Assembly (NCBI GenBank): GCA_964035545.1
Contig: OZ037767.1
Span: 9,620,581 to 9,684,580 of the forward strand
Direction of reading: 5' to 3'
DNA: 64,000 nt
Source of the DNA: Bugula neritina
Lineage: Eukaryota > Animalia > Bryozoa
A program made the translations under genes and the position numbers. The notes below the pieces were generated by a model. The model had not been told where the DNA came from, made no database searches, and saw nothing but the letters and a program-made list of their open reading frames with translations. This document shows, piece after piece, positions 1 to 58,052 of the stretch (position 1 is its first letter; each line of letters starts with the position of its first letter).

Positions 1-3000
1 TGCCCTAGACTACCTCGCATGCATAGCTAATGGCTGTCTAAGACATGGTAGGTCCAAACATAATTTATATATTCTTTTGTCACTCCTTGATGTTGTCTGA
101 GTGGATGCAAGGCAAATTTTATCACAGCTAGTAAAACTTTGCCATGTTTAATCAACATTTCCATTATTACATCTTTTCTATTTTCTTCTGAATGTGACTT
201 TAGTGTATAAATAAGTCCATGTCTTTCCATATTCATATATGTCTGTTTTCGCTTCGCTATGACTCATATATGTCTGTTTCCTGTTCACTATGACTCATAT
301 ATGTCTGTTTCCTGTTCACTATGACTCATATATGTCTGTTTCCTGTTCACTATGACTCATATGTCTGTTTCCTGTCTACTATGACTCATATTTCTGTTTC
401 CTGTTCACTATGACTCATATTTCTGTTTCCTGTCTACTATGACTCACATTTCTGTTTCCTGTTCACTATGACTCATATTTCTGTTTCCTGTCTACTATGA
501 CTCATATTTCTGTTTCCTGTTCACTATGACTCATATGTCTGTTTCCTGTTCACTATGACTCAGATTTCTGTTTCCTGTTCACTATGACTCATATTTCTGT
601 TTCTTGTTCACTATGACTCATACAAACGAATTATTTAGTTTCACTGCTCTGTTTTCTCTCGGCACAGGAATATGTCTGATGATTTGGAACACCTACCTTC
701 TAAAGAAAGTGTCTGCACTAGTTTCATTGGTTGAGAAGGTGGGGAAAACTCCTAAAGATCGACTGTGTGTAAAGGAAGTGGGAATGGATACAGCTACGAC
801 TACAGAGTTCATGACTGTTGTATGTGAATATATGGAAATATTTTTACAGGTAAATATCCTTTTTATTTTGAAATAGCTCTGTCATATCTACCTACTAAGG
901 ATAAATTTAAAGTTGCTCCCAGAATTTAAATAATAACAAATATGCCAGTTTATACTCTCTAGACACAACACAGACTTAGGATCTTGATTAATAACTCTAT
1001 ATATAGTTGATGCAGTGGATAACTGTCAACTCACAGATGCCCGTATATAATATATCTAACTAAAAAATATTTAGCTAGCCTGTGTACTACAAACCCTTTG
1101 CTTTCTTACAGGCTAATTGTGATTTTTCTGAGCCCTTGATATACAAGGAGGAGCCTCGTTGGGCGTCCGAAGATACGACGGGCCACAGTCTAGTTCAGAT
1201 GGCATGTCAGTGGAAGGAGACAAACTACAGGTTACTGAAGCATCACTCGAACCTCCTGTCTCTAGTTACTGCGATCCTTACATTCACTATGAAATCTGTT
1301 AAGATTATGACTCTCTTTGATCACAATGTAAGTGAATATATCTATCAACTATAGTTAGTAATTCTCTTGTTGAATCAAAGTTTGATTGACGACTGCTATT
1401 TTATTCTTTATAAAATAAGCTCACTATGATTTTACTCAACCCTTTACATAACTAAAGCAACTAGTTACTAGTAAGTTAGTAGTTGCGCTAAAAGAATAAT
1501 TGCTGTAGGTTACTGGTTACACTAGCAGACAGATACTAGTAAGTTACTGGTTACACTAAGAGACAGTTACTAGTAAGTTACTGGTTACACTAAGAGACAG
1601 TTACTAGTAAGTTACTGGTTAAACTAAGAGACAGTTACTAGTGAGTTACTAGTTACACTAAGAGACAGTTACTAGTAAGTTACTAGTTATACTAACTGAG
1701 AGGTAGCAACGGGCCTGTACTTTGTGATTTGAGTTGAAATGCTGAAGTTCTATCTCATATATTGTTAAAGCTACCTTAACAACTCTTTACCTATCTGAAT
1801 TCAAAGTATATGAAATTGTGAGTGGAGAGTCTACCAATATGGGGGTCAGTATTTTCTAATATTGATTGTTACATGGGAAAGCATCCTGCAGATGTTTGAT
1901 GTTGGTTATTATAGGGACAAGCAGCTTTCTTCCAGCAGCTTACGTCTCACCCATATATGGGCATAGAAGGTAAAGACGACCTGATTTCTGTTCACAGAAC
2001 TGAGTTCCTCTGCAGAATCCTGCTGAACAGTGTTGAATGTCTGCCAGACAGAGCCACTGTTCAGACTGCTAGTCGCCAGATCAGAGTAGACCCGGTACTT
2101 TTACTTTGCACTATTTGTTTGCTTTTTGTCTGTCAGCTTCGTTTGCTGCTGTAGAACACTTGATGTTATACTTACTCCGGTGTGCTTGTTGTCATAGCTT
2201 TCACAGGTTTATTATGCTGCATACTAGCCACGCAGCTACAGTATCTATAGATGTAACTGATTAGACAACTAAGGCACCCTGATGTATCAGGAGGTTTGGA
2301 TTTTCTTGCAGACGTCTGATGCTATGCGATGGCCGGAAACTGTGATGAAACTGGCCGAGTCATTTTTGTTAGATACAGACCATTTGCGTAAACATCATGT
2401 CTCCCTGCTCGTTTCACATGGCTATGACCTGCTTGCTCTAGAGGTAAAAGCAATTTCTTTGAGTGTTCTGAATTTTATGCATTTCCTGCCAAAATACTTA
2501 CGTGACAATCAAATGAAAACGTGAAATATGTAGTCGTTATATGCACATTTCTTCTTAATTGCAGTGGTTCTGGTTGTGTTTATTCATACTTTGTCTTTGT
2601 AACATGAATACTCAAAACAGTTACATTATTTATAATTGTTCTGCAACCTTATTCTAATTAGTGTACACACATATGCGCTCACACACACACACACACGCAC
2701 TCATGTATGCATGCACCACCTTCTTCATTTCATGCACACATGACTCAAAAGATATATAATGGAGTTTTATTATTAATGCTATCAGCAGTTGATGCAAGTT
2801 GTGCATGAATTAGAATGTAAAAAAACTTTTATTTACATGACATAATTATCAATGATTTTTTACAGTAGAGTGTGTGTGCGTGTGTGTGTTTGTTGGTGTA
2901 CACACATACTACATGCTATCAGAAATTTACTCTTTATAATCAATTCTATAGAATTTTATTGCATCATTTTCTCTCTTACGCTCACCAGGTTGTGCCATTT

Positions 3001-3768
3001 ATGAAGAATTCACAACTAGCTTACGTAGCGATGTTGGAGTTGTGTGCTCAAAGGTTTTCGTATTTCATGCTGGAATCTAATCAAGAAACCCTCACAGAAA
3101 TAACTAGTGCTGCATCTCCAGCGCTCGTTAACTGGCTAAATGAAAGGGTATGTCATCCTATATTCATTCAAATCTGTGACTCGTATGATAATCCTACACA
3201 ACGGTATTATGACATATATGCCAACTGAGTATAATATATGGTGTAATATATGCTCCACATATACTACTGTAATATATGGTGGGGTTCAACTTCTCTCCAC
3301 CACTGATTCACCTGCTCCTACAGCTTCCTCAACCAGACTCTGTTGTATTGGTTTATATTAGTTGTAGTGAACTATGTTGATTGTATTGAACTGTATTGAT
3401 TGTATGGAACTATATTGATTTTATTGAACTATATTGATTTTATTGAACTATATTGATTGTATTGACCTACATTGATTGTATTGACCTGCATTGATTGTAA
3501 AGTAATTTACTGTTGTTTAAGCGTAACTGGTAGGTAGATTAATATTTAACCCAGGGCTCAGCTGTTATACTCTAGCCAATCAATTGAATGACAGTTTTTC
3601 TTCAACTTTAAACTAATACTGTAGTACACTGGAGGCATAGCAGCTCGAGATGTACCCATGACTGACACCAACTCTCTTCTCTTACACATTGTGCAAGGTC
3701 TCCATTCTACTCCAAAAGAACTTAGATTTGCGCAGGAGTTGTATTCCCTTACAGCTGACCATTGCTGA
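1..3768 (+). CDS. RAB3GAP2: Rab3 GTPase-activating protein non-catalytic subunit, 3' part (5'-partial)
   Basis: Phase-consistent GT-AG exons <1-47, 668-849, 1112-1327, 1915-2094, 2312-2443, 2989-3147, 3625-3768 (TGA). GICLMIWNTYLLKKVSALVSLVEKVGKTPKDRLC, KIMTLFDHNGQAAFFQQLTS and WPETVMKLA match the recalled C-terminus of vertebrate RAB3GAP2 ([53 protein letters not shown]). Confidence 0.92.
236..621. repeat. Intronic minisatellite, ~30-32 bp unit (TATGTCTGTTTCCTGTTCACTATGACTCA), ~12-13 copies
   Basis: Visible tandem repeat. Confidence 0.95.
1510..1695. repeat. Intronic minisatellite, ~34-35 bp unit (GTTACTAGTAAGTTACTGGTTACACTAAGAGACA)
   Basis: Visible tandem repeat. Confidence 0.9.
3368..3500. 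repeat. Intronic ~20 bp tandem repeat (TATTGAACTATATTGATTG)
   Basis: Visible tandem repeat. Confidence 0.85.
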
Positions 3769-4125
3769 CTCATGCTGACACTATTTACTACATAAATGGT
3801 AGTACTAGTATAGTAGATGTAATGAAAACGGTATTATTTATTGAGCTTATTTGTAACTATTTTATAAAAATGTGGTGTCGCATTTTTCGTTATATTTAAG
3901 CATACTACTAAGTTTGTTAACTTAATGTTAATTGGGTGTATGTATATGATTTCATCACATGTTGTCAATATACTTTACTTGGTGCTAAAAAATACCGGCT
4001 TCAATGTTTTGCATATAATATTACTTTTATTACACAGCAAACTTATATGTTTCACATCCCATAAAACATTTATACAACCGACTACTTTTATTGCACGTTA
4101 CTGAAACAGGAAGGTTACATTCTTT

Positions 4126-4852
4126 TTATTTTGCCTTTCCTCCTCTCTTTTGTCTTTTTGAGCCTTTCTTTCCTTTTTTGAGAGATTTTTTAGCCACACG
4201 CCTGCGAGATTGTGACTGTCTCCTTCTTCCAGCTTTTGCTCGTCTCGATCGACTTCTAGAGCGTTTTCCTTTGGATGTTCTACTTCTTACTCTAGATCTG
4301 CTGCTACGTGATCTGCTTCTGGAATGTTTGCTGCGGGATCGACTTCTGGACTTTTTGCTGCGGGATCGCTTACTTCGGCTTCGTTTGCTGCGTGATCGGC
4401 TAGCTCTACATCACACATTTATTTACAACATCATGATTTTGTGATCACATGAAGCTATTTAAATATATTTTTGTTATTTAATGTAGAGACTTACTTTTTG
4501 CTTTTAGATTTGCCTCCCTTGGGCTTCCCTCTAGTTTTTGACCTTCCTTTACGAACTCTTTTCACAGTCAGCTTAGCTGACCGTCTCTTTCCTGCTGGCC
4601 CACTCTTGCTGACTTTGAGTTTTCTGTTTGTAGTCAAAGTTTTCTCATTTACATTTGCTGAGCCTCGTTTTGGGAGTGCGTAGCATATGGTCTCATCTAA
4701 CAGATAAATAAATTAAATAAATGGGCTTGTATGATTGTTGCAAGGAGGTCAATTTGAAGTTACATTTAATCAAAGTGGTTAGCTGGTAACAACCTACCTA
4801 GATCTACGGAGTTTCCTCCAGTATATCTTGTTGGGGATTTTGATACAACCAT
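4126..4852 (-). CDS. Arg/Lys/Ser-rich basic protein, protamine-like (sperm nuclear basic protein-like), ~178 aa
   Basis: Exons 4852-4798, 4696-4495, 4405-4126 with GT-AG introns and matching phases (1,2). Protein MVVSKSPTRY...KRRSAKLTVKRVRKGRSK...ASRSRSKRSRSKRSRSKKSRSRSRS...KRGGKAK*. AATAAA ~35 nt after the stop. Function inferred from composition. Confidence 0.82.
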
Positions 4853-6425
4853 CTTGTTTCTCAGTTAAATATTAAATGGTTTCATTCTTGCTGACACTCT
4901 TTAATATATTCATCTTAACAATTGTGATTGTCTTCTATTGGTTATTCTGAAAAATGAAGCCATGACAAATTGTATCATCATTATCTGCTGTCACAAGCTG
5001 AAATTGCATAAAATATTTCAGTTATTGCCTGATACTAAAATGATCAATTTCTTTTAATTTGTGTGTCCATTTGTATACAATTACAATTATCTTTGCCTAG
5101 TCTAATTTGTTTCCTTTCTGATTTAGAGGTGAAACCAATCGATAGTAGACAACTTCTTCTGTTTACTAGTATGCAGTGTACTGTTGTACCTGCAGCCCCA
5201 ATAATGACATATAATGCTGAGTGCCAGTTGCATGACATTAATTCAAAAATCAATATTAAAAGTCTTCATAAGTATTCAATTTAAAATCCTGGGCAGTCAA
5301 CTTACTATCACAGTCTATATTATACAGGCCTACACACACACTGCGCACTAACACACACTCAACTTAATAAGGAATAAAATATTTCTTGTTTACTCCTGGA
5401 TGCCTAATATGAAACACATTATTGATGGCTCAAACCAGCACAAACTGAAAGCTAACTCTAACTCCATCACTAAACCCAACATATAACTGATTGATAAATG
5501 GTAAATGCCTATATAAAATGCAATATACTGAGCAACTGTGCAAAGACATGACAGCAATCCTGGCCAATGGCCACTCTCATGAACTTTGTTCAACAACTTT
5601 TAAAACTAAATGTGATAACCACAAAATCTATTTCAAACAAAGGAAATAATACTAAACTCAATAAGCATGTCTGGAAGTTGAAAGAGGAGAACGTGCACTT
5701 CAACATCAAATGGAATAGGTACCATAAAAATATGTGGATCAAACTCGAATGTGATTAAACAGATGCGATTTATGCAGCTCTGAAAATAGATAAATTTAAA
5801 ACAGCTGGAGTTGTTACATCTCCAAAAATTCAATATGAAATTTCGAGAGCGCGCGCAATGTTTACTCACGCGTATTTAAACGACGCCAAGTGTAAGACGC
5901 GCCTTGTATTAATACAATAACTAACGCAATTTTTAACAAGATCATTCTGCCGCAAAGGCCGGAGAGCGTAGTCTACTAACACGAAACAGTAATTTGGTTC
6001 ACAACAAAGTTATTATGTAATTATATGCAATATAGGACGTTTCAATAATATCAGCACTACTCTAGTTGGTCATTAATATGGCCAAAGGTAATAATAATGT
6101 TTCTATGCAATCCGTAGCTCAAATATGATGACAAAAACCGTAAGGGCAGCTGCAAGCCTTTATGAGCCAAAAGTAAGAAGGTACTGTGTGTGAAATTATA
6201 ATTAGGGTCATTGCTTTAAAATTTAGTATTTAGTATCTCACCCAGAAGTTTGATACCCGAAATAGTGGTGAGCATAGCTTGTTTATTGCAGGAAATGAGA
6301 ATTCGTGTCTGTGTTACAAACACACAGCAGCCTTCTCAAGGTACAACTTTGGGTCCAGCATAGCAGTTCAATCAAATCTGGTTCACAACAGACCAAGTAG
6401 TGAATGTAACAGCAGGCAGAAGGTG

Positions 6426-6697
6426 TGTAGTAATTTGTGTAACTACTATGCGTGGGTTCCTAGCTTGTAATTATAGTCTATTTATCTACACCAATAAAGT
6501 ATTTAAGTAAGAGTTTCCAAAGTTTATTCACTACTAATTACAAAAAAGATACAGTACGTATACAGACTAGAGATTACATCTTCGCTTAGTTAGCACGCTC
6601 TCTCTACTGCAAAACTACTACTAGCTGAGGGTTATCACGTGACGCACTCGGATAGGCTGAAGGAATACGGGGACGCGCGTATTACGTCCTCACTACA
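6426..6697 (-). repeat. 3' LTR of element A
   Basis: Identical by eye to 13723-13994; preceded on the minus strand by the PPT at 6698-6710. Confidence 0.96.
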
Positions 6698-7049
6698 CCG
6701 CCCCCCCCCCAGCAGAAAGCCCTACTTTCTGATAACACAGATACAATAAATTCGAACATAAAATGTTATAAAACTAAAAAAAAACCGAGAGCGTGTGGCA
6801 CATAAAAGAAAAACATGGCTATGTACAGTAATAAGAAAACATATACATATAAAAAATATAACAGTAAATACACAATGGCACCGGCGGGAGGCACTTATAA
6901 AGGGATAGTTTATAGAGGTAGAGCTGTATACTGGTAGGTTACTATATTGTTACACTGAGTAATTGTTTGTGAGCACCGGCGTGAGAAGGGTCTGGAATGG
7001 GGCACCACCTGCTGTACCATCACGGATAGAGAGAGGAGGGACATCATCT

Positions 7050-8138
7050 TCAAGCACTTCCTTTCATTCGGGCTACAGAGGCAGAGAGGGCCCGGAGTTC
7101 TGATGCGGCGGCGGAGATTCTCGGTGTCAGTCTTTGCACCTCTTTCTCTAATTCTCGTATCCGCTCTTCTGCCTCGCCTAGATTCCGGGCAGGGGCAGAG
7201 TGTCGGTTGGGGGATGAAGATGGCCAACGCCGTTTACGAGAAGGCCTTGGGGAGACAGGGGGGGAGGGACGCCATCGCTGTGGTATATCGATGCGTCGTA
7301 ACACGACTCTTGGTATGGAGTCGGGGCGGGGCACTGTGCGTGCGGGGGGTGAGGGACGGGATACGCGTGGTTTCCTATATCCGGGTGGTTTAGGGCAGGG
7401 TCCCTGTGTGATGGTCCTGGGTGCGGGGAACTCCTGACGCAGCCGTTCATATCGAGCTGGGTCTGATATGAATGGTCGGATGAGATTAAGGAATTGTGGA
7501 AAGGAGGGTTCGTCGACTTCGAACAGGTGTCCAACATGGCATCCCATAGTTCGCTGGTGACGGAGGATGTAGTCCCTGTGGTAACTATATTCACCACAGG
7601 GACAAAAGGTGGTGAAATAATGTTGGGGAATATGAACTCGAAGTCTTCGTGGAGTAGTGAAGTGAAGCTGGCATAAACGGCAGGTGGTGCATTGGTCGTC
7701 TCCCTAGTGCTCTCGTATCAGTGTTTCTGTATCTGGTGTAACCCAGCATGACTGCTGTAAGAGTGCCTCCGGAAGAGTAGTGGGAACGGGTTCCTCGTTC
7801 CAAGCCATTTCTAGTGACGGCATGTCACCAGAGAGAGGAGAGAGAGCGGTATCTAAAAGAGCAGAATTACTGTTAGATCGAGTATGATCTTTACACCATA
7901 ATTCTGATGACAACCGACTGTTACTAGTCTGGGAGTCATACATCTTTTCAGATAGCACTCGAGGGACTGAGTCGTGTCGTGTAGACTGACAGAGAGACAT
8001 AGTGTCAAGCTCCAGATCTAGTAGATCGTCGGCCATCTTTATGTTCTCGTCGCCTTTCACGTAGGACTCAGTCCCCAGTAGTTGTGATTCAATCAAGGCG
8101 ATTAAATCAGAACTGACTGATGGTAGACTGGTTTCCAT
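7050..8138 (-). pseudogene. Element A ORF3 (acidic region, tandem zinc fingers, PxVxL, coiled coil), ~362 codons with one in-frame TAG at 7704-7706
   Basis: ORF-track ORFs 7704..8138 and 7050..7547 share a frame. The bridge translates as H*GDDQCTTCRLCQLHFTTPRRLRVHIPQHYFTTFCPCGEYSYHRDYILRHQRTMGC, homologous to the C-terminal extension of element C Pol. Confidence 0.88.
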
Positions 8139-8203
8139 GAGTGGAAATGTTAGCTCAGAGCAAGCTTACCTGAGAACCCGGTATTTGTAATCATACTCAG
8201 CGT

Positions 8204-11200
8204 TCAAGCTTGGATGTCCGTGGATTGAGTTTGAATGCGTCTTCCCTTGACAACGTCAGCGTACGAAAAGACTGGGCAGCGTGGTTGTTGCGCACGGCTG
8301 GAACTATTTGCCCCGGGCGTAGTAGTTTTGTTTACTACTCCGCCTTCGCAAAAGTTGAGATTTCCGTGGTGTTCACAACTCCCACGCTTTGTTGCCAGTC
8401 CTTCCGTACGGCGCCCAGCTAGACTTTCATAACTGCCGTTTGTAACACGGTCACATATGAAGTCTTTAAGGTATGCTGGGAGTTGTCTAGTACGCTGTCC
8501 CCGTTCCAGGGGAGGTGACGTATCAGCTGGAGAGGGAGTTGTAGCTGTTGGTTGGGGCGGCGTACTCACTGGTGGGCTATTTTGCTCCACCTGTGGTGTT
8601 TCTGGCCCGCCGTTGGTGGTGGTGTTCCCCTCTCCGCTGTTGTCTCCAGATGGAGCCCCTCCCACGGGGGGGTTTTGCACTTCCGGACGCGGATGTGGAA
8701 CCGGAAGTGGTGGGGGTAGACTTGGTACTGGGGGCGGTGGGCGCACTTTTGTTGGTGGGAGTGGCGTCTCCTGCTTCACCAAGTCCTCTCCCCGCGGCAC
8801 AACCACTTCGTATTCTGGTCCATGCCGTTGCCGCCCACGCGTTACTGTCTGCCTCCTGGGCTCCAACAACGGGGGGGCTGCTCCTGCTGCTCCTGGGCTA
8901 GCCCAATACGGTTTCAAGCGGGCTTCGTTCTGGACAGAGACCTGTCCAGATCGCTCCAACTTGTACGTATGATTGGGCATAGCCTCAACTACTACGTAGG
9001 GTCCCACAAACTTAGGCTGGAGCTTAGCCGCTTGTCCTCGACGCCTACGGTAGTTGATCATCCACACCCAGTCCCCAGTTTGATAGAGAGGTGGTTCCTG
9101 AGAGTCCTCTCGCCGTACCTGCCACTGCTTCGCCCGCAGTATTTCGTGTGCGGCTCTCAGGTCCTCTATCAATTTACTGGCATACTCGTGGATGGTATAG
9201 TCCTGCTCTGGGATGTGGTATGTGAGGTGGTCAGGCACTCGCGTCTCTCGACCGAGCATCAGGAGGTTAGGGGTTTCCCCCGTACTGGTGTGTGGTGTAC
9301 TACGGTAGGCCCGCATGACTTGCGGCAGTACCGTATCCCACTCCTCCTGACCCCGGCCGAGGAGCAGACTGCGCAGTGCATCGCCCAACATGCGATTGTT
9401 GCGTTCCACCACCCCGTTGCCCTGAGGATGGTACGGGGTGGTCCTGCTTTGGTTTACTCCCCAGAGGCGGCAGAGGTCGCTCAACAGTTGGGACTGGAAT
9501 TGAGCCCCCTGGTCCGAATGTATTTGCTCAGGTAGTCCAAGATAGCAGAATACATTTTGGTCCAGCACCCTGGCCACTGTGGGGGCGGACGCATCTGGAA
9601 TAGCCAGGGCGTCCGCCCACCGTGTAAAGTGGTCGGTTAATACTAGGATCCAACTGTTTCCTCTGGGGGTGACGGGCATGGGTCCGACTAGGTCGATAGC
9701 TACCACCTGCCATGGCCTCCCAGCATATAGCCTACGCCGTCCCGCTTCACCAGGGAGACGGCCATGCTTGCTGGCCTGGCAGATTTCGCATTGTTTGACT
9801 CTACGCCGCACCTCACGCTCCATGCCGGGCCAGTACCACCGGAGTTGTAACTTGGAGAGCACCCTGCTCACCCCGGCGTGGGCTTGCTTGTGGGTGTCCC
9901 ATACTAACTCCCGGCGTATGGCGGCTGGGCAGATCACCCTCTTCCTGCCGTACTGATTGTTGTGAGCAGCCACTGTGATGGTCAGCAGACCATCTGGCCC
10001 GATCCGCAGGGAGTCCCAACGTTGGCAGTACGACCGTAACTCGGTGCATCCCTGCCGCAGTTGTTCTTCACTGGGTCGTCGCCCCTCCTTTTTGGCACGA
10101 TATACGTCGGCTACCACTCCAGGGAGGTCCTCCTGGAGTCTTCGTAGCTCCCTAACGTTATCAGCCAAGACAGGATTGGCACGGAGGCGTTGGATAGCCT
10201 CCGGGGGCGTAGCGGCCTTCTGTAGGAGTTGACCCTGGTCCCAGTCATACTCCGTTTCAGAGTGGTTCAGTGCTCTCAACTCGGATTTTGGAGGACCTCC
10301 GTCCCTCTTCTCGATGTTGAGGCACTGTTTACACCCCTCGTCCGGTCGCCGGCTCAGTCCATCAGCATTGCCGTGTTTCTTACCGGGTCGGTGCTCGATC
10401 CGGTAAGAGAACTCGGCCAGGACCTCGAGCCATCGGGCGACTTGGCTGGACGGTTCTGCTCTCTTACATAACCAAATCAAGGAGGCGTGGTCGGTCCGCA
10501 AGCGGAACTTCCTGCCGTATAGATAAGGTCTGAAATGCTTCACTGACTTGATTACTGCCAGTAATTCCTTTCGGGTAGTGCAGTAATTTCGTTCAGTGGG
10601 CGAGAGAGACTTACTGTAGTAGGCCACGACTACTTCGCGGCCCTCCTGCACCTGGGACAGCACAGCGCCGACATTTTGGTCACTGGCGTCAGTATCGAGG
10701 ATGTACTCCAGGGCAGGGTCTGGATAGGCCAGGATAGGGGCCTCCAGCAGGCGGCCCTTGAGGCAGTCGAACGCTCTCTGTTCGACGGGAGTCCACTGCC
10801 AGGTCACCCCCTTTGCGGTGAGCCGGTTTAATGGCTGCGCTACCCCCGCAAAGTCTGGTATGTATTGCCTGTAATACCCTACCAGCCCCAGGAAAGCCCA
10901 TAGCCCGGTCAAATCCTGGGGGGTTACCCAATCTTCTATAGCTCGTACCTTTTCAGGATCCGTCGCCACACCGTGACGGCCGACGATGTGCCCCAGGTAC
11001 TTCACCTCTGGCTGCAAGAGAGCGCACTTGGAGGGTTTGAGCTTCAGATTGGCGCCTCGGAGTCGATCGAAGACCTCCCGCAGACGGCTGACGTGTGTCT
11101 GAAAGTCTGGGGAGATCACGATGACGTCGTCGAGGTAGACTAGCAGTGTCTTCCAGTGGAGTCCACTGAGGACCTGTTCCATGAGCCGCTGGAACGTAGC

Positions 11201-12780
11201 GGGGGCAGAAGTCAGTCCGAAGGGGAGGACTTTCTACTTCCATAAGCCGTCCCGCGTGATGAACGCCGCCTTCTCCTGGGCGTCTGGGCTGAGGGGGACC
11301 TGCCAATAGCCGCTCAACAAGTCTAGCGTACTGAAGTACTTGCTGCCGGCTAAGGCGTCCAGAGATTCGTCGATCCTGGGTAAGGGGTAGGCGTCCTGTA
11401 TGGTCACGCTATTGAGCTTGCGATAATCCACACAGAACCGCCAACTGCCGTCTTTCTTTCGGACCAGAACGACCGGTGAACTCCACGCACTATGTGCTGG
11501 CTCGATGAGGCCGCGGTCCAAAAGATCCCGGACTTGTTGGCTGACCTCCTTTTCCTTCTCGGGTCCCAGCCTCCTAGTGGGCTGCCTAATAGGGGTAGTC
11601 CCTGCAGCTAGCGGTATCTCATGACGGACGGCCGTGGTCAGGCCGACGTCATGGTCCCCACTGCTGAACACGTCGCTATAATCACGTAGCAACTGGGCCA
11701 TAGTCTGGCGTTCCACGTTGCCCGTGCAGCCGTCACACGCTGCCTGGTATAGCTCTTTGACGTGTTTTGGGACGGTCCCCCGCCTAACTGACGGGCTCTG
11801 TTGGGGACCTTCCGTCGCAGCTCCCAGCGACGGCCCTATATCCTCCTCCTGGATGGAGTGGAAGCGACCCAGCATGGATCCTGACGGTAATTGTACCGCT
11901 TCGGAGAAGGGGTTGACACACTGCACCAAGATCTCTCCTCGGTCAGTCAGCCGGTTAAGACTGCTGGCGAGTTGGATTCTAGTGTGCGCACCTTCGACAA
12001 CCCCTAGCCCCGAGAGTTGGCTATTGTTCACTCTGCAGTGAACGGTAGCCCGGGAGCGGCCGGGTATAGTACAGTTGCGTACTACCTGCACACCTCCCGC
12101 TAGAGGACGACCGAACTTGTCGACACAGGTGAGCTCTTTGCCGCCCATCAGCATTGCTGACTTGCTAAAGTCAATATGGCACCGTGTCTCTTCAAGAACG
12201 GCATCCCCAGTATGGCATCTTCCTCCAGTGGGCTGATGACGAAGGTTTCCTGAATGGCCTGGTCGCGGACGCGCCCAGCCAATTCTATGATACCGTAGAA
12301 AGGAATCCGTGACCCGTCAGCTAGGGTGCCCGGTTCCCCGGTATAGGGAGCTAAGGCTCCCCTCTCCTTGGGAGGGAGGGTGTCGAAGACCCGACGGCTG
12401 AGGAGATTAGTGGTACACCCGGAGTCTAACAGGAAGGTGACAGCTTTACCGGCCACCTTCCCTGGCAAGAAGTAGCTGCCTCCGTGAGGTTGTACCCGTA
12501 CTCCCCCAGCGTGCTCGGTCTCGGCCGAACGGGGCTGTGCCCGTTTGTTTCGCGGTTTGCGGGGCCGGTGAGAGTTTCCTTGCGGGGGGGTGTTTTGATC
12601 CTCCCCGATGCCCTGAGGGGCCTCGCTGGTCTGTTCCATTACTGGTAACGGACTGAAGCGGTTGGTGAGAGGCAGAGAGAAGGGGTCTCGTGGTCGACCC
12701 GGTTGGCTGGTTCGGCGAGGTGTTTGCCATTGACGGGAGGGTGTGCTGCTGGGCCTGTACGGGCTCCTGGCGGCATCCAC
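8204..12780 (-). pseudogene. pol: Element A pol (PR LLDSG, RT YLDD, RNase H DAS, integrase HHCC/DDE, GPY), disrupted
   Basis: Frameshift near 12180 after the protease; TGG>TAG nonsense at 11234-11236 in RT (GLWK*KVLPFG versus GLWKWKVLPFG in element C). Confidence 0.93.
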
Positions 12781-13661
12781 CCCGTTTTCCTCTCGGTGTG
12801 GGCCCGCGGAGCTCTGGGGGTCTCCGGGGGGGTTGTGGCTTCTGCTGCCGTTTGAATCGCGGGCCGCTCGGGTGGCGGTGCCCCTGGTTGCCGCTTTCCC
12901 AGCGTCGCATCATAGGTCTGGGGGGTTTTGCTGCCGTCCTCTTACTCTTCCTCGAGTGGTTGTATGTTATTGTCGCCACCAATTGTCCCAGTCTAGTCAT
13001 CAAGCGGCTTATCTCCATCTCTAGTGGGTTTAGTGGTCGCGGCAGCTATGCGGACCGGATGGTCTGGTTCCCTAGAGGTCTGGGGAGTGGCCTCTTCCGT
13101 CTTATAGAGTCGCTCGGCTCCAGCGTAGGCCTTATTCTCCTGGATTGCAGCCTCGATTGTGGTCACTCCCTTGGCTTGTAACTGGTGGTAGAAGTGCAAA
13201 GAGTTGAGAGACTGTACAAAGGCTTCGAATGTGTAATGCCGTCTGTGTGTTTCTGGCAGATCGCTATACGCGGTCCGTGCCAGTCTCTGCACCAGAGTGG
13301 CGTGGTCAGAAAGCGGTGTACATGTCTTGCGGAGTAATCCTCGCAGCTTGGACTTGGCGACGGCAACGGGCATGCCAAAACGGGCCCGTAGTGTAGCAAT
13401 GATCCCGTTTACGCTAGGCTTCCACCCGTACGGCTTGGCTTCTTCCGTCAGTGCCATCCGCAGTTTTGTAAGAGTTACTCTTGGCGGCCATCTTGTAATG
13501 GCTGCAGCTTCACGGAACTCTTGAACGAATTGTTCAATATCCTCGCGGCCTGTGAACACGGGAACCTCTAATGTGTTCCTATATACCTCCTCTCCAGCTC
13601 CGAGAGGGCCTATAATAATGTTCCGCTCACCTCCTTCCATTGAAGTTACTCCCTCGTCCAT
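12781..13661 (-). pseudogene. gag: Element A gag, frameshifted near 13030, degenerate Zn knuckle
   Basis: PVFTGREDIEQFVQEF..WP..LRARFG aligns with element C Gag; homology continues in ORF 12446..13018. Confidence 0.8.
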
Positions 13662-13702
13662 GATGTTCTAATACTTCTCATTGTTCTCGTACAGTAGCTA
13701 GA

Positions 13703-13721
13703 AATCCCACTGCTGCCACCA
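13703..13721 (-). promoter_or_regulatory. Primer-binding site, tRNA-Leu type (TGGTGGCAGCAGTGGGATT)
   Basis: 1 nt from the 5' LTR; complementary to the recalled tRNA-Leu 3' end. Confidence 0.85.
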
Positions 13722-13722
13722 C

Positions 13723-13994
13723 TGTAGTAATTTGTGTAACTACTATGCGTGGGTTCCTAGCTTGTAATTATAGTCTATTTATCTACACCAATAAAGTATT
13801 TAAGTAAGAGTTTCCAAAGTTTATTCACTACTAATTACAAAAAAGATACAGTACGTATACAGACTAGAGATTACATCTTCGCTTAGTTAGCACGCTCTCT
13901 CTACTGCAAAACTACTACTAGCTGAGGGTTATCACGTGACGCACTCGGATAGGCTGAAGGAATACGGGGACGCGCGTATTACGTCCTCACTACA
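13723..13994 (-). repeat. 5' LTR of element A
   Basis: TG..CA termini, adjacent PBS and TSD. Confidence 0.96.
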
Positions 13995-26700: not shown

Positions 26701-29700
26701 ATTGCTTGTCTCTACATTGCTTAACTAGTATAACAGCAAACTCTAAAATAAATTTTTCTTGAGGCACGTTTATGTCAAATTTGGCCATCCGGGGCACAAT
26801 GGGCCACCTTGACCGGGACACAATGGGCCACCTGATTATTGTACCCTGATCACTGTTATTAGTTTGTTTGCCCAAAAAGTTGGTTGAAATGTTACTAAAA
26901 TTTATAGATATAGCCATTTCTGACCTTTTTGTAAAATATCAAAGACATCATGGTAAGACTACCAAACTACAAGGTGAAGCTTCCCTAATATATATATCTG
27001 GTGAGGTTAAAGCTTTGCTATTTTATACATAATACAAAACACTCTGCTGTTGCTACTAGTAAATAGTCATGATATTTATTATACATTATTTCATTGAGGG
27101 AATATACATGTATTTGACTAAAATAAATTGTGATTTGCTCATTTGTTCCCCCCCCCTCTACTTTCCATACTCCCGCCACAAACCGAAGCCATGCACCTTA
27201 GCTACAGTTCATAGAAAAAAGTTCACTCAGAATTATGTAGTACAAGTTACTAAAGTTTTTTTTTAATAAAAGTTCCTCTGAAGTGTAAAAGAAAACATTT
27301 TTAGTTCTAAAAAGTAATGATAATGGCACCGTAGAATCGAGTGATGTGCGTTTGATTTTGCCTTCCTCTGCTATCCATGGTGGTGTTGTGTTGTTTGACT
27401 CGCTATTATTCACCGCGAGACTCGTTGAGCTCGGGGATTTTCCTACTAGCTAGAATTGAAATAAATCACGATAATTATCAGCTTAGACTCAATCCAACGT
27501 TGTTGTACTCTTACGCACCAATCACACATGGTGGCAGCAGTTAAAACTAATAATGGGCGATGAAGAAGTTCAGCAACAAATAATTGTGCATAGGAATGCA
27601 CCCAGAATCGAACCACCAGGTGAGATCGTTTTGAATTGTGAGCGTGAGCAAAACTTCAGAAGATTTAAAAGCCGGTGGCAGTCGTTTTACATTCTGTCTA
27701 GACTTTCGGAGGAAAGTGATGAGTACCAGAGAGCATTGCTATTATATACAATTGGTGATGATGCATGCCGAGTGGTAGAGTCAAGTCACAAATATCAGAA
27801 TGATAAGAGTCTAGCAGCGATAATAGACATTTTGGAGCAATACTGTGTAGGAGAACGAAATATAGTGCACGAACGTTATAAATTTAATACAAGGTGTCAA
27901 TTACAAGGAGAGAATTTTGATGCTTTTTACTCAGAATTACGTACGCTAGCAGATAAATGTGGATTTAATTACCGACCTGCCACTGATGAGGCACCAGCAC
28001 CATTTGATGAGATGCTGAGAGATCGAATTGTTCTAGGAATTAGAGATGACTCTCTTAGAAAGAAATTGATTTCTCAAGGTAACACTTTAACACTAGACCA
28101 GGCAGTACGTATTTGTAAGAGCAGTGAAGTCACTTCGACCGTGATGCAAAGTGTAACACAAGGAGCAAGCTCAGGGTCTGTAGATGCTATAAGTAAAGCA
28201 CAAAGCAGATACCCTAATTATAAGCAAAGCAAGCCAAGTCGTACACACAAGCAGGGAAGTGCTGTCCAGCTGCCAGTTAACTCTCAGATGTACAAGCCTA
28301 CAAACAGCCAAGATCATTGTAAAAGGTGCGGTAGGGAACCACATTCAAAAGCGGAATGCCCAGCTAAGGATGCTCAATGCAGGAAGTGCAAGAAAGTGGG
28401 CCACTTCCAGCGGCAATGCAGAAGTACATCCATCCAGGAGGTGACCGAAGCAAGTAGTGACGATGGTATAATGTTCACAGGAGAGTTCAAAATAGAAAAC
28501 CTAACTGTGGATGCTTGGAAAGCCGAAGTAGCAGTAAATGGTAACTGTACTACTTTCAAGCTCGATACAGGTGCAGATGGTACAGTAGTCAGTGACAAAC
28601 TACCGTGGCTGTCTACTATTTCACTGCAAACTACAGGAGTCCGCTTATATGGACCTGGAGGAAAGCAACTCCAAGTCTTAGGAACTTTTGAGGCAGATCT
28701 TCAATATAAAAGTCAAAAGTACAAGGAGACAGCCTACGTAATTCAAAATCAGTCAACCTCTCTACTCAGTAGAACTGCTTGTGAAAAGTTAGGACTGATA
28801 ACATGCCAAGTAAAGCAGCAAGGGGAAATAACCAAAGACATTCACACAGGCTTCTCGAAGCTATTTAAAGGCCTTGGAGCACTCAAGGGATATTCATACA
28901 GAATATCACTAATTCCAGATTACCAGCCAACATGCATCTACACTCCAAGGAAAATTCCCATTCCATTACGAGACAAAACCAAGAAAAAGCTAGATGAGAT
29001 GGCACAACAAGGAGTTATCTCTCCCGTAACAGAAGCTACAGAGTGGTGTAGTGGAATGGTCCCAGTCCTCAAACCATCAGGAGATGTACGCGTCTGTGTG
29101 GACCTGACTGGCCTGAATAAAGCAGTTAGAAGGGAAATCTATCCAATGCCAGCAGTCGATGAAAGTATTGGACTGTTGGGGGCAAGTAAAATCTTCTCAA
29201 AGCTAGATGCCAATAGTGGGTTCTGGCAAATACACTTGGACAAGGAGTCAAGAAAACTGACTACCTTCCTCACACCTTTTGGCCGGTTCTGTTTCAACAG
29301 ACTTCCATTTGGCATATCTAGTGCACCGGAGATCTTTTCTCGAGCTATGTGCAGACTACTAGGCGACATAGAGAATGTCATCTGCCACATGGACGATATT
29401 CTAGTTCATGGTAAAGATGCAGAAAGCCACGATAAAACCTTAAAGCTGGTTTTAAGCAGACTGGAAGAAGCAGGACTCACATTGAATGAAGACAAGTGTG
29501 AGATTGGCCAAGCTCAAGTGAAGTTTTTAGGCCACATTATAGATGCTAAAGGAGTCAGCCCTGACCCGGATAAAGTCGCATCAATACGTGACTTCCCAGC
29601 CCCTACCTGTAAGACAGAGTTGAGACGACTAAATGGTATGCTGAATCAGCTAGCTAAGTTTATCCCTCACCTGTCTGAAATCACAGCTCCCATGAGAGAG

Positions 29701-45429: not shown

Positions 45430-48400
45430 TCAGCGGCGGTCGCCAGATCGACCCCGCTCCAGGCGGCTAACTCGTCTCCGGAGTTGCCCCAGCTCCTCTT
45501 CATATCTGCGGAGCTGCCGGCGTAATTGGTGTACCTCCTCTGCCAACTGAGCTGACGTCTGGTGCCTAGGGCGGTCGGTGGTACCACGGGCAGGACGTCG
45601 CTGGCGGTGCGTCTGCTTCTCGCCCGCCGCCGAGGGTCGGGGGCCCAGGTCCGATGAATCGGCCCTGGCACCTGGTCCGACCCGTGCCAGCATGACCCGA
45701 AGTGGCTGGGTGGCTGCCGGTTGGGGGGTTGCGGCGGGCTCCCCTTCTTCCTCCCGAACAGGCCTACACGCGGGGAATCCCAGGGCGAGAGCAGCCCGTT
45801 TGTGGGGATCCGCCACGTGTGGCAGCACCAGGTCCCGAAATTCGGGAAAGGAGGCCTGGTCTACAGCAAACGTGTAGCCCGTGTGGCAGTGAGCTATGCG
45901 TTGATGTCTCAACACATAGTCTCTCTGGTAGGAGAACTCCCCACACGGGCAAAACACGTTGATGTAGTGCTGTGGGGCGTGTACGCGCAACCGCCGTGCA
46001 GAGGAGAATTTCCTCTTACACTCATGGCAGATGCGGTTGCCCGGCTCACCGCAAGCATCACCAATTTTTAGGTTGGTGGGTCCAGTCACCCAATACTGGC
46101 GGGCGACCAGGGCCCGAGGCAGGGCCAGTATTGGGGAGGTATCTTCTTCTGCTGGCAGGTGGTCGCCGTGTAGGATGCCCTGCTCCTCCCCGGCCGTGAG
46201 CTGAAGCTCGACCGGTTTGGGGTCAGGGCCAACCATGGCGGAACACACCTCTGTGGAGGAGGTGGCGGCCTGCTGGCTGGTAGAAGCCGAAGCAAGGGCC
46301 GGTGGGAGAGGGGAGTCGGACCGACTGGCCTCCTCAACGTCCATTCGCTCCTCTAGAATAGATAGTAGAGGCTGTGAGAAGCCGGTCTCACTATCGCCGA
46401 AATTCGGCACAGGCGTGTATGGAGATAAGTTAAAAACCGAGGGCCGAGGTGTATCGCAGAAATTGACTGAGCCTACATCGTGATTTAACAAAGTATCAAT
46501 GGCCGAGTCATCTCCAAGATCCATCTCGGCCTCCGGTTCTAAGAAATCAGAACCAAGTAAGTCTAGTAAAGACCAGTCTACTGTAGTTTGACTAGACTCC
46601 GCAACTGGAGGATCTAATCTAGAAGAAATACCTGATTGTGTATCTGGTAGAGTAATGCCCATAGCTGCTGATAGCGTACGGAGAACAGTGATAAAATCAA
46701 AATGAGTATTAGAATCAGAATTTAGTTTGAGTTGCAACTGCCGTGCGAGCTGTGTGAAGTCAGAATGAGAAATTGCCGAACCTCGTGCTTCAGAAGTTTT
46801 ACCTGCTGAAGCCCGAGTCGCGTGGCTCGTGGGAATTTCCCCCGGATTTTGAAAAGACAACTCGCGTGATCGAGTGTCTTCCGAAATTCGGTCGGCCATT
46901 TCTTCTTCTTGGTGGAATTCTCCGGGGTGATGGAGGGAATTTCCAACCAAGATGGGGTGGCAGTCAGTGTGGGGGGGGTCTTCCTCAGGAGGGGGCCCCT
47001 CCAGGTGTCCTACAGCATAGTCTGCCAGGTACCTGGGAGGTCTTCTTGGCCGCTGGCTCCTCTCAAGTGGAACAGACTCTGGTGGTGTTGGTGGCTCCTG
47101 GGCTGCCCTGGTAGGGGGGTCCCCGTCTTCACCCCGTACGGGGGTGGGGGTGTCCTCCCCCGGGAAGGGTTGTGAGCCAAGGGCTTGCCGCTGTTCCTGC
47201 TCCCGTTCCGCTCTCTGCTGTCGCTCCAGCTGCTCTATCAGGGCGGCTTGCTCCTGGTCCGCCTCCCTGGGGACCATAATCTCCACCTCACGGGGCCGGG
47301 TGGCCCGTCCACGACGGTTGGGCTGACGGTGGGGCTCCAAGAGGGGTGGAGCCTGACCCACCGCGACTGGGCTGGCATGGTAAGGTTTGAGGCGCTGCTC
47401 GCTCTGGACAGAGACCTGTCCAGAGCGCTCCACACGGTATGTGTGGTTGGGCAGCACCTCTACTACGCAGTAGGGGCCGACGAACTTGGGCTGAAGCTTA
47501 GCCGACTGTCCGCGCCGCCTACGGTAACTCACCATCCAGACCCAGTCTCCCACTTGGTACAACGGGGGCTCCTCTGAGTCCTCTGTGCGAGTCTGCCACT
47601 GCTGGGTGCGCAGCGCATCATGAGCTTTGCCCATGATGTCCATCAGACCCTCCACATATTCGTGTACCGGTGACTCGGGGGCAGGAACATGGTACGTCAG
47701 GTGTTCCGGGACCCGCGTCTCTCGGCCTAACATCAGGAAGTTTGGGGTCTCCTGCGTGGCGGAGTGTGGTGTGCTGCGGTAAGCCCGCATGATCTGTGGC
47801 AGCACCACGTCCCATTCTTCCTGACTTCGACCAAGCAGCAGGCTCCGGAGCGCGTCACCCAACATCCTGTTGTTCCGCTCGACGACTCCGTTCCCTTGCG
47901 GGTGATATGGGGTGGTCCGACTCTGGTTCACCCCCCATATCCGGCAGAGGTCTCCCATGAGCTGGGACTGGAACTGGGCACCCTGGTCTGTATGTATCTG
48001 CTCGGGCAAACCGAGGTAACAGAATACATGTTGGTCCAGGGTCCGGGCCACCGTGGGGGCGGTGGCGTCTGGAATAGCCAGAGCATCCGCCCACCGGGTA
48101 AAGTGGTCCGTGAGCACCAGTATCCAGGTGTTCCCTCTGGCGGATAACGGCATAGGCCCGACGAGGTCTACCGCCACTACTTGCCACGGTCGACCAGCGT
48201 ACAGCCGGCGTCGACCAGTGGTTTCCGTGGGGCGGCCATGCTTGCTAGCTTGGCAGACCTCGCATTGCCGTACCCGCAGTCGTACGTCCCGAGTCATTCC
48301 GGGCCAATACCAACGTAGCCGCAGACACCTGATGACCCGACTGACTCCAGCATGAGCCTGCTTATGGGTGTCCCAGATCAGTTCCCGCCGGAGGGCGCGT

Positions 48401-51400
48401 GGACAGACGACGCGGTCCCTCTTCTGCTGGCGGTTGTCTGCTGCTAACGTTATCATCAGGAGGCCATCGGGACTGACCTTGAGGGCATCCCAGCGACGAC
48501 AGAGGAGTTGGAACTCAACGTCCCCCTGTCGCTGCTGTTCCTCGCTAGGCCGTCGGCCCTCCTTCTTGGCCCGGAAGATGTCTGCTACCGCGCCGGGTAG
48601 CGTCTCCTGGAGTCGGCACAGCTCCTTGACGTTCTGGTGCAGAGTAGGGTTGGCGTGGAGTGCCTGGACACCGTCCTGGTGGGTTTCGGTCCGAAGATGG
48701 CCGTGCTCCCACTGGTAGGTGGTGCCCTCCACTAGTCCTGCTTCCACGTCAAGGCGAGCGGGTCCCCCGTCCCGCCGTTCAATGTGTAGGCATTGCTTAC
48801 AGTCCTCTACCGGCCGGCGGCTCATGCCGTCGGCGTTCCCATGCTTCCGGCCTGCACGGTGCTCTATCCGGTAAGAGAACTCAGCAAGAATCTCTAGCCA
48901 ACGAGCCACCTGGCTCGAGGGCTCTGCACGTTTACACAGCCATATCAGTGATGCATGGTCTGTTCGCAGACGGAACGATTTCCCATACAGATATGGCCGA
49001 AAGTGCTTGACCGCCTTGACTACTGCTAGGAGTTCCTTCCTAGTGGTGCAGTAGTTCTTCTCGGCGGCCGCGAGAGTCTTGCTATAGTAAGCCACGACCA
49101 CCTCACTTCCACCCTGGACTTGAGACAAGACGGCTCCCACGCTGTGGTCGCTGGCGTCGATGTCCAGGATGTACTCCTTGGCTGGATCAGGATACGCCAG
49201 GATTGGCGCTTCCATTAGCCGTTGCTTGAGGTGGTCGAATGCCTGTTGCTCCTCCTGTGTCCACTGCCACCGGACTCCCTTCGCGGTCAGCCGATTTAAC
49301 GGTTGAGCCACTCCTGCGAACCTAGGTATGTACTGCCGGTAGTACCCTACTAGGCCCAGGAAAGCACGCAACTCAGGGAGGTCACGGGGAACAGTCCACT
49401 CCTTCACAGCTTGTACCTTCTCTGGATCGGTAGCGACCCCATCACGGCCAACCACATGGCCCAGGTACGTGACTTCTGGCTGCAGGAGTGCACACTTGGA
49501 GGGCTTCAGCTTCAGTCCAGCAGCCCGGAGACGGTCAAAGACCTCCCGCAGACGGCCGACATGAGTCGAGAAGTCTGGGGAGATGACAATGACGTCGTCC
49601 AGATAGATGAGGAGGGTCTTCCAGTGTAACCCACTGAGGACTTGCTCCATGAGTCGTTGGAATGTTGCCGGAGCGGACGTCAGTCCGAATGGCAGTACTT
49701 TCCATTTCCAGAGCCCGTCGCGAGTAATGAATGCTGCTTTGTCCTGTGCATCAGGGCTGAGGGGCACTTGCCAGTACCCACTAAGCAGATCCAAAGTACT
49801 GAAGTACTTGCTACCCGCGAGGGCGTCTAGAGACTCATCTATCCGGGGGAGAGGGTAGGCGTCCTGGATGGTAGCGTTGTTGAGTCTGCGGTAGTCCACG
49901 CAGAATCTCCAGCTACCATCCTTCTTCTTGACCAGGACCACTGGGGAGCTCCACGCACCGTGGGCAGGCTCAATCAGATCCCGGTCCAGAAGATCCTGTA
50001 CCTGTCGGCTCACCTCCTTCTCCTTCTCCGGGCCCAGACGTCGGGTAGGCTGCCTGATGGGAGTGGTGTCGGCTGCCAGGGGTATCTCATGAGAGATAAC
50101 CTTAGTCAGCCCCATGTCTCTATCGCCACGACTGAAGACATCACTGTACTCCGCGAGTAGTTGAGCCAGTACTTGGCGTTCAGTACTACTCGTACAGTTT
50201 CCGCATGCTCCGCCATACAGGTCAGCCAGATGCTCCGGGACTGCTTCTCGTCTGGTGTGAGGGGGGTTTCCCTGGTTGTCGGCCACTGTCTCCAGTGCCG
50301 GACCCACATCCGCTTCCTGGATGGAGTGGTACTTCCCCACCAGCGCTCCAGCCGATAATTGGACAGGTTCCGTGAAGGGGTTGATGCACTGCACGAGGAG
50401 CTCTTGCCGACAATCTAGCCGATTCAGGCTGTTTGCTAGTCGGATGGCTCCGTGCGTTCCTTCAACCATCCCCAGGCCGGCGATCTCCTTGCAGTTGACT
50501 CTGCATCGGAGAGTCGCCTGGGACCTCCCCGGAACTGTGCAGTCCCGCACTACCTGGACTCCGCCCACCAAGGGCCTGCCAAACTTGTCAACACAGACAA
50601 GTTCCTTCCCAGCCATCACCACCACTGACTTCTGGAAATCCATGTGGCACTGGTGTTTCTCCAGGAAGGGCATTCCCAAGATGGCGTCCTCCTTCAGCTG
50701 GCTGACTATGAACGTCTCGTGAACTGCTTGATCACGGACGCGTCCAGGTAGTGAAATGACGCCGTAGAAAGGAATGCATGATCCGTCCGCCAACGTACCA
50801 TGCGCACCTTCATACGGCTCGAGGCTCGCCCGCTCTCGTGCACCAAGGGTGTCAAAGAGACGCCTACTCAGCAGGTTGGTAGTGCACCCAGTATCCAGTA
50901 GGAATGTGGCAGCTTTACCCGAAATCTTTCCGGGCAGGAAGTAGCTGCTTCCATACGGCTGGGTGCTCCTGGAGCGGTCAGTCTCTGGGGGAGACACGAC
51001 TTGGGTCCACACAGCGGGCCTCCTCTTCGTCTTAGAGACAACGGGGGTTTTCTGAGGTCGGGAGGGTAGCTTGGGATACTCTTGCGAGTAAGCTGAATCC
51101 TCCTCCACAACCTCCTCGGGCAACCCCGCGAACCGGTTACGGAGTGGCCAGGCTGGAGGATCGGGTAGACCTTGCGGCCTCCGAGATCTCCGAGGTGTCT
51201 GCCATCCGGTTTCTTCTAGTTCCATCCGGGTATCGAGTGGCAGGGCAGGAGGATCGGGTAGGCCTTTCGGTCTCCGAGATCTCCGGTTTGCGTGCCACTC
51301 GATGTAGGTCGACTCTGGAGAGGTCTCTTCTGTTGTCTTCCGAGTCCTATCCCGGACCGGATTGGCGTGGGGCCCACGGGTGGCGGAATTCACCGTGAGC

Positions 51401-53199: not shown

Positions 53200-58052
<4,853 letters not shown>

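Follow-up and report, generated by a model that had tools for sequence, protein, structure and literature searches.

A selected third gene behind pol in a Ty3/gypsy retrotransposon of the bryozoan Bugula neritina, broken in one copy by a private TAG codon

Introduction

The extra genes of LTR retrotransposons reveal how such elements cope with their hosts: env genes point to infectivity and chromodomains to safe landing sites. In chromoviruses a chromodomain at the C-terminus of integrase is thought to steer integration by binding chromatin, according to PMC6317226 (citing Gao et al. 2008). Errantiviruses and gypsy carry env as a third ORF, placed after pol and before the 3' LTR. Env-bearing gypsy elements are known in bryozoans and other phyla, and the published bryozoan ones have a gB-type env and the gene order gag-env-pol (PMC13524379). 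LTR retrotransposons of bdelloid rotifers carry non-env ORF3s encoding a GDSL esterase or a DEDDy exonuclease, a precedent for the capture and retention of diverse non-env third genes by animal LTR elements (PMC5408684). In the Ogre elements of legumes, an intron inside the polyprotein, between gag-protease and RT, has been shown by experiment (PMC6317226).

Here we analyse a 64,000-nt stretch of the Bugula neritina genome ("the window") and a third gene, ORF3, of a Ty3/gypsy element in it (element A). As in chromoviruses, an extra non-enzymatic module ends Pol in families resembling element C, a second element of the window. This module is, however, no chromodomain but a domain with two C2H2 fingers plus a zipper, it forms a separate gene in several families, and a targeting role, by analogy, is only putative. 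ORF3 occupies the place of errantivirus and gypsy env, and expression from spliced RNA may be shared, but ORF3 has neither a signal peptide nor a membrane segment nor a fusion-glycoprotein fold. While the bdelloid ORF3s are enzymes of recognisable families, the finger/zipper protein described here, fused or free, belongs to no Pfam family. A putative 53-nt interval would do for pol and ORF3 in one family (family E) what the intron does in Ogre; it differs in lying at the pol-ORF3 junction and in being predicted from sequence conservation. Compared with tandem C2H2 proteins (Kaiso, ZBTB7A/20/38, CTCF, SALL4), finger 1 is canonical and the finger pair superposes weakly over ~50 residues, but finger 2 is non-canonical and both fingers are locked in a ~120-residue domain. 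A literature search found no paper on a finger/zipper ORF3 or on a pol-ORF3 intron, and this type of third gene has no named relative in the searches run.

Results and Discussion

The window consists of AT-rich host DNA (~30% G+C) with interspersed G+C-rich blocks, and sits on a 32-Mb piece of the assembly that was searched (216 Mb in 321 pieces). Element A spans 7.6 kb on the minus strand (6426-13994). It is identified as a Ty3/gypsy LTR retrotransposon by two LTRs of the TG...CA type that are 100% identical to one another, a 4-bp target duplication (CACC, at 13998-13995 and 6425-6422) and a polypurine tract (Table 1). Gag, protease, RT, RNase H and integrase follow in gypsy order, the protease region being recognised solely through its likeness to element C, and the Pfam domains of pol run RVT_1, RT_RNaseH, Integrase_H2C2, rve. 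The last pol ORF matches RT_RNaseH, Integrase_H2C2, rve and SH3_Tf2-1 and closes with a TGA at 8206-8204 that is kept in 30/30 copies. Neither element A nor element C has a chromo-family Pfam match in its pol tail. The gag-pol of this copy is also broken, by an in-frame stop inside RT and by frame changes between gag, protease and RT. At two of the break sites, 12181 and 12738, nearly all contig depth of sequencing run X1 shows a one-base insertion or deletion relative to the window.

Table 1. Features of element A, of its ORF3 and of the related module elsewhere. Coordinates are those of the window unless a lineage is named.
Feature	Position	Strand	Remarks
5' LTR of element A	13723..13994	-	272 nt, TG...CA, termini read directly
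3' LTR of element A	6426..6697	-	272-nt direct repeat
Polypurine tract of element A	6710-6698	-	G-run directly upstream of 3' LTR
Break sites in gag-pol of element A	11234-11236, ~12150-12181, ~12738, ~13023-13028		
Last pol ORF of element A	8204..11182	-	RT end, RNase H, integrase, SH3-like domain, proline-rich tail
Neutral-looking proline-rich pol end, family A	8207-8800	-	shared variants (N:S) 12:4 and 6:2, small counts
Pol-ORF3 spacer	8139..8203	-	65 nt, closed in three frames; ATG 8194-8192; 17-mer 8177-8161
Putative 53-nt intron	8117..8169	-	donor CAG/GTAAGC at 8170/8169, CTAAC, Y-rich tract, CAG ending at 8117
Junction in other lineages	L097 1090-1180; L031 ~5085-5170; L034 ~175-260		
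ORF3, codons 1-144	7707..8138	-	N-terminal helix, acidic-hydrophobic stretch, disordered Ser/Thr-rich region, start of globular domain
N-terminal helix of ORF3	8117-8067	-	
Acidic-hydrophobic stretch of ORF3	8036-7992	-	
TAG, codon 145 of ORF3	7704..7706	-	private nonsense change inside folded domain; private base is 7706
Compact domain of ORF3, residues ~120-240	7419..7781	-	helix-helix, two C2H2 fingers, two C-terminal helices
Basic proline-rich disordered linker	7197..7418	-	P-R-V-V-L at 7313-7293, SRKRR at 7241-7227
Leucine-zipper-like helix, last codon and TGA	7050..7196	-	residues 315-361, one helix in model
Element C pol	45430-51393		1987 aa, comparator
Module as in-frame C-terminal tail of element C pol	45433..46260	-	finger domain ~46128-45706
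Module fused to pol, several families			45-100% identical to element C tail; open frames of 1981-1998 aa, many copies
Module free-standing, family A			~40 copies, 362 aa
Module free-standing, family D			after 240-nt spacer, 316 aa
Module free-standing at DNA level, family E			over 100 copies, 357 aa

Behind pol, two ORFs on the minus strand look unrelated, and the sequence-only reading had joined them into one protein of ~362 aa split by a single stop. Our analysis bears this out. The two ORFs, 8138-7704 (144 codons and the TAG) and 7547-7050, lie in one frame, and since the 156-nt bridge between them (7703-7548) holds no further stop, the whole frame from 8138 to 7050 comprises 362 codons plus the final stop, with the TAG as its sole interruption. 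The acidic stretch, the SRKRR cluster and the terminal coil that had been read from the translation are likewise present, the coil (7196-7056) being modelled as one long helix with clean heptads. Both zinc fingers had been placed in the bridge, which holds for finger 1 (~7682-7620, wholly inside) but not fully for finger 2 (~7604-7536): the latter only begins there, and its last ligand (C/H, residues 200-201) already lies at the beginning of the downstream ORF.

The TAG is not fixed in the family. The genome contains at least 40 copies of the family A region at 87-100% identity; the site is a sense codon in all 29 other aligned copies, ORF3 is fully open in 20 of these 29, and the same is true of six out of nine subfamily copies at a greater distance (86-95% identity). 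Within 8203-7050 (1154 nt), base 7706 is the sole base unique to the element A copy, and a 62-nt query spanning the TAG matches at 100% only its own locus among 41 candidates. A private TAG at the sole unique base is therefore best understood as a single lesion of a very young copy and not as a recoding signal. Programmed readthrough, by which this copy would still yield the full protein, might be suggested by one in-frame stop with conserved coding sequence on both sides; it is, however, contradicted by the privacy of the TAG, which is missing from every other copy examined, and neither a structure nor a context signal was seen at the site. We regard its probability as close to nil. An assembly or consensus error, with the real copy intact, is slightly less remote, because the comparison with sequence reads covered 7726-13724 and thus ended short of base 7706, and because so many near-identical family copies can confuse polishing. 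Yet the change is a substitution and not a homopolymer indel, the remainder of the 1154 nt agrees with the other copies, and this copy has several further breaks in gag-pol. Such an error at 7706 is possible but unlikely for a substitution, and on the whole we consider it very improbable. With the TAG at codon 145, inside the folded domain, the product of the element A copy is limited to a fragment of 144 residues. The stretch itself thus represents one freshly inactivated copy, and its main use is to confirm that the frame across the stop is a real gene.

ORF3 evolves under strong purifying selection. Its dN/dS between subfamilies amounts to 0.11-0.19, and variants common to at least two copies show an N:S of 28:80 against a neutral expectation of 2.84:1. 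The last ~200 codons of the pol ORF, by contrast, look neutral (Table 1), whereas the integrase part shows an N:S of 5:8 and the first 79 codons of ORF3 one of 0:4, again in small counts. ORF3 of family A lies in a different frame from pol, and the layout of pol stop, 65-nt spacer and ATG is identical in 30/30 copies, so that its description as free-standing is correct at the DNA level. Our data show that ORF3 is a real third gene behind pol, kept by selection in the lineage of element A. A reading of ORF3 as an errantivirus-type env was rejected because the protein has no membrane segment (the maximum 19-residue hydropathy is 0.93); it also lacks a glycoprotein fold.

The sequence-only reading had further regarded ORF3 as a second example of a module also carried by element C. 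Aligned to the element C tail, the piece after the TAG indeed gives a highly significant match (37% identity, E = 2e-35), and element C carries the same module as its pol tail. The piece before the TAG adds a collinear L-P..L....W.T..T..I motif, shared with element C and conserved in all families. The module marks an entire clade of gypsy elements: about 1000 candidate loci, fused or free-standing, were listed in the Bugula neritina genome, the free forms being open frames of 311-366 aa. Other environmental eukaryotic DNA also contains the module downstream of gypsy pol: a word search returned 94 unnamed proteins from assemblies of JGI, ENA and Logan, most of them 357-366 aa long with an identity of 60-73%, and those with known context stand behind gypsy RT and integrase on metagenome contigs. 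A word search with region 1660-1987 of the element C pol gave no match. The profile search of the full library yielded 353 matches, 140 of them at E <= 1e-10 and none named, and the distant relatives among them retain the same core and the C-terminal coil. A tree of the module separates an A-like clade (families A and E and the metagenome relatives) from the fused families plus family D with a support of 100/100, and leaves the order of fused and free forms without support. One further locus (L086, ENA ERZ650156, gene 2938-6564) encodes 1208 aa with an aspartic protease domain close to its start and the finger module at around residue 900. There is no RT or integrase match on record for this protein, which may belong to a deleted, non-autonomous relative.

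A structural model of the full protein, built with an alignment, contains a confident domain (residues ~120-240) and the long terminal helix (315-361), the remainder being disordered. Folded alone, the domain reaches a pLDDT of 91.4 and a pTM of 0.82; the TAG site falls at the end of a helix within it, at a pLDDT above 90. Finger 1 has the classical C2H2 spacing of PF00096 and PF13894 (C-x2-C-x12-H-x3-H, more fully C-x2-C-x3-F-x5-L-x2-H-x3-H), while finger 2 is a variant (C-x-C...H...C/H) whose last ligand varies. In 27 sequences the finger ligands are invariant, as are, beyond the fingers, one W, one T and the pair V-D; an R is invariant as well. The best Pfam C2H2 scores of the fingers, 13.5-19 bits, stay below the cut-offs of 25-27, and a profile search of the PDB reaches tandem C2H2 fingers at E = 2e-5 (SALL3). 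In structure searches with the domain only the finger pair superposes on tandem C2H2 pairs, and it does so weakly (Z 3.1-3.3 over ~50 residues, rmsd 2.4-3.0); nothing solved matches the flanking helices or the whole ~120-residue domain. Foldseek against the PDB and an Atlas shape search with the whole ORF3 model returned nothing above noise, as did BFVD with the domain alone. The wide VIA search with the whole model was swamped by the terminal helix and gave generic coiled-coil matches only, with the domain alone its matches were confined to the finger pair, and the Atlas feature search led to generic C2H2 clusters.

The linker behind the domain is strongly basic and rich in proline (20 K+R, 2 D+E and 20 P per 80 residues; pLDDT below 50). 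Its P-R-V-V-L motif is conserved across families, P131 being nearly invariant and V133 invariant, and the fused families read L-R-V-x-L where family A has P-R-V-V-L. In HP1-binding proteins a P-x-V-x-L pentapeptide binds the chromoshadow dimer. The heptads of the terminal zipper carry L I V I L V A at position a and A L L A L M at position d.

Taken jointly, the observations are probably explained by a selected third gene of a gypsy element that may encode an integrase-linked nuclear partner and that was broken in this copy by the private TAG. More tentatively, and with rather less confidence, we propose for the protein itself that it is a nuclear, dimeric partner of integrase that binds nucleic acid or chromatin and tethers the integration complex. 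Nucleic-acid binding would follow from a resemblance of the modelled fold of only Z 3.3. The acidic head, the basic cluster and the zipper would be just as compatible with a transcription activator or with an adaptor for RNA export.

In the first of these alternatives ORF3 would be a transactivator of the element's own LTR that works like foamy-virus Tas or HTLV Tax (no homology was found) and combines an acidic activation stretch and a DNA-binding finger domain with a nuclear signal and a zipper for dimerisation. An acidic-hydrophobic head, a basic cluster, two fingers and a zipper are indeed there, and the contact helix of the finger, R-R-L-R-V-H, hardly varies between families. On the other hand, many families make the module only as the C-terminus of Pol, which would be odd for a factor needed before Gag-Pol, and finger residues that stay constant in very diverged families fit element-specific promoters badly unless the LTRs share a motif. 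We therefore consider a transactivator unlikely.

The junction between pol and ORF3 is of interest for the integrase link. The columns of the spacer are 95% invariant across subfamilies, compared with 66% for third codon positions of ORF3. Within the spacer, a 17-mer with the donor-like CAG/GTAAGC is identical in four lineages: families A and E plus two from metagenomes, with ORF3 proteins that share only ~53-75% identity with that of family A. This putative donor stands 31 nt upstream of the ORF3 ATG, and together with a pyrimidine-rich stretch that closes with CAG, likewise conserved, 52-53 nt further downstream it delimits a putative intron that contains this ATG. The interval measures 53 or 52 nt in every lineage, and the phases, computed exon by exon, are 1 at both sites. 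Residue 8 of ORF3 is always V, D or A, i.e. its codon always starts with G, which would be the G of the putative acceptor AG. All four lineages conserve two ATGs: one in frame, 8 codons ahead of the putative donor, and that of ORF3 inside the interval.

In family E (L097) 373 pol codons are open up to the donor and 349 ORF3 codons past the acceptor; in lineage L034 pol is open for 67 codons up to the donor and ORF3 is open past the acceptor. Removal of the interval would thus give, in both, a Pol-ORF3 fusion resembling the hard-wired one of element C. In family A and lineage L031 no such fusion is possible, because a TGA stands 11 codons before the donor. As judged from its conservation, the splice-site pair may alter how free-standing ORF3 is at the RNA level. 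Run X1, which is DNA-unitig-like, showed over 7726-13724 low-depth joints without GT..AG ends on the element strand. Four copies share a candidate leader donor (AG/GTGAGC) ~30 nt into gag, but its conservation is uninformative since the site lies in coding sequence. The junction of family D (L093 1060-1300) was examined as a parallel and rejected: a GT...AG pair at ~1097-1223 exists, and the joined frame stops at once. In this family, with its 240-nt pol-ORF3 spacer, an ATG is found immediately past the pol stop.

An element with the putative splice sites would need a factor of the kind proposed in the second alternative, a Rev/Rex-like adaptor that would export unspliced genomic RNA from the nucleus and combine a leucine-rich export-like stretch, an arginine-rich signal and multimerisation. 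By eye, L-x3-L-x2-M-x-L in the acidic-hydrophobic stretch fits the class-1a export pattern, and the basic cluster and the zipper would serve the other two functions. This reading, however, depends on pattern matching and the fingers resemble DNA-binding pairs; for the junction RNA, folding revealed no significant structure (z = -0.87) and an Rfam search no family, so that no structured RNA target was seen near it. The fused families, moreover, argue for an action together with Pol. An RNA adaptor appears improbable to us, even more so than a transactivator.

For the integrase-linked partner speak the fused families as well as the splice-site pair with its frame phases, while the sub-threshold Pfam scores of the fingers and the TGA that blocks a pol-ORF3 fusion in family A count against a tether. 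In sister families the module terminates Pol, either hard-wired or, via the putative 53-nt intron, joinable to it. In family A ORF3 is separate from pol at the DNA level and probably translated from its own ATG; alternatively, the conserved ATG before the putative donor could serve as start on a spliced RNA. A broader scenario, in which a gypsy clade recruited a finger/zipper integrase partner and keeps it hard-wired, splice-joined or separate, with splicing setting the ratio of Pol to Pol-ORF3 and the module deciding where or whether the element integrates, is conceivable but doubtful at present. A module that is fused to integrase, possibly splice-joined, or free amounts to a natural experiment on the accessory functions of retroelements and their regulation, and since copies are young and abundant the ORF3 system is experimentally approachable.

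The insertion sites of family A were compared in the 3' flanks of 29 copies. An RTAY duplication (ATAT, ATAC or GTAT) was found in 24 of the 29, and no long motif beyond this short preference, which counts against simple targeting directed by the fingers. Five to six of the family A flanks lie in low-complexity tracts of the TAATAG/TATTAC type. Two of the copies, L002 and L003, have an identical flank and are therefore a single insertion that was duplicated.

Elsewhere in the window, a different retroelement at 27553-31605 on the plus strand has a single gag-pol ORF of 1350 aa, closing with the usual R-x-P-x-R-F-x-D-Y motif and lacking a finger tail. At 55050-55590, a long (CA)n/(TG)n microsatellite gives rise to spurious His-Thr and Cys-Val ORFs.
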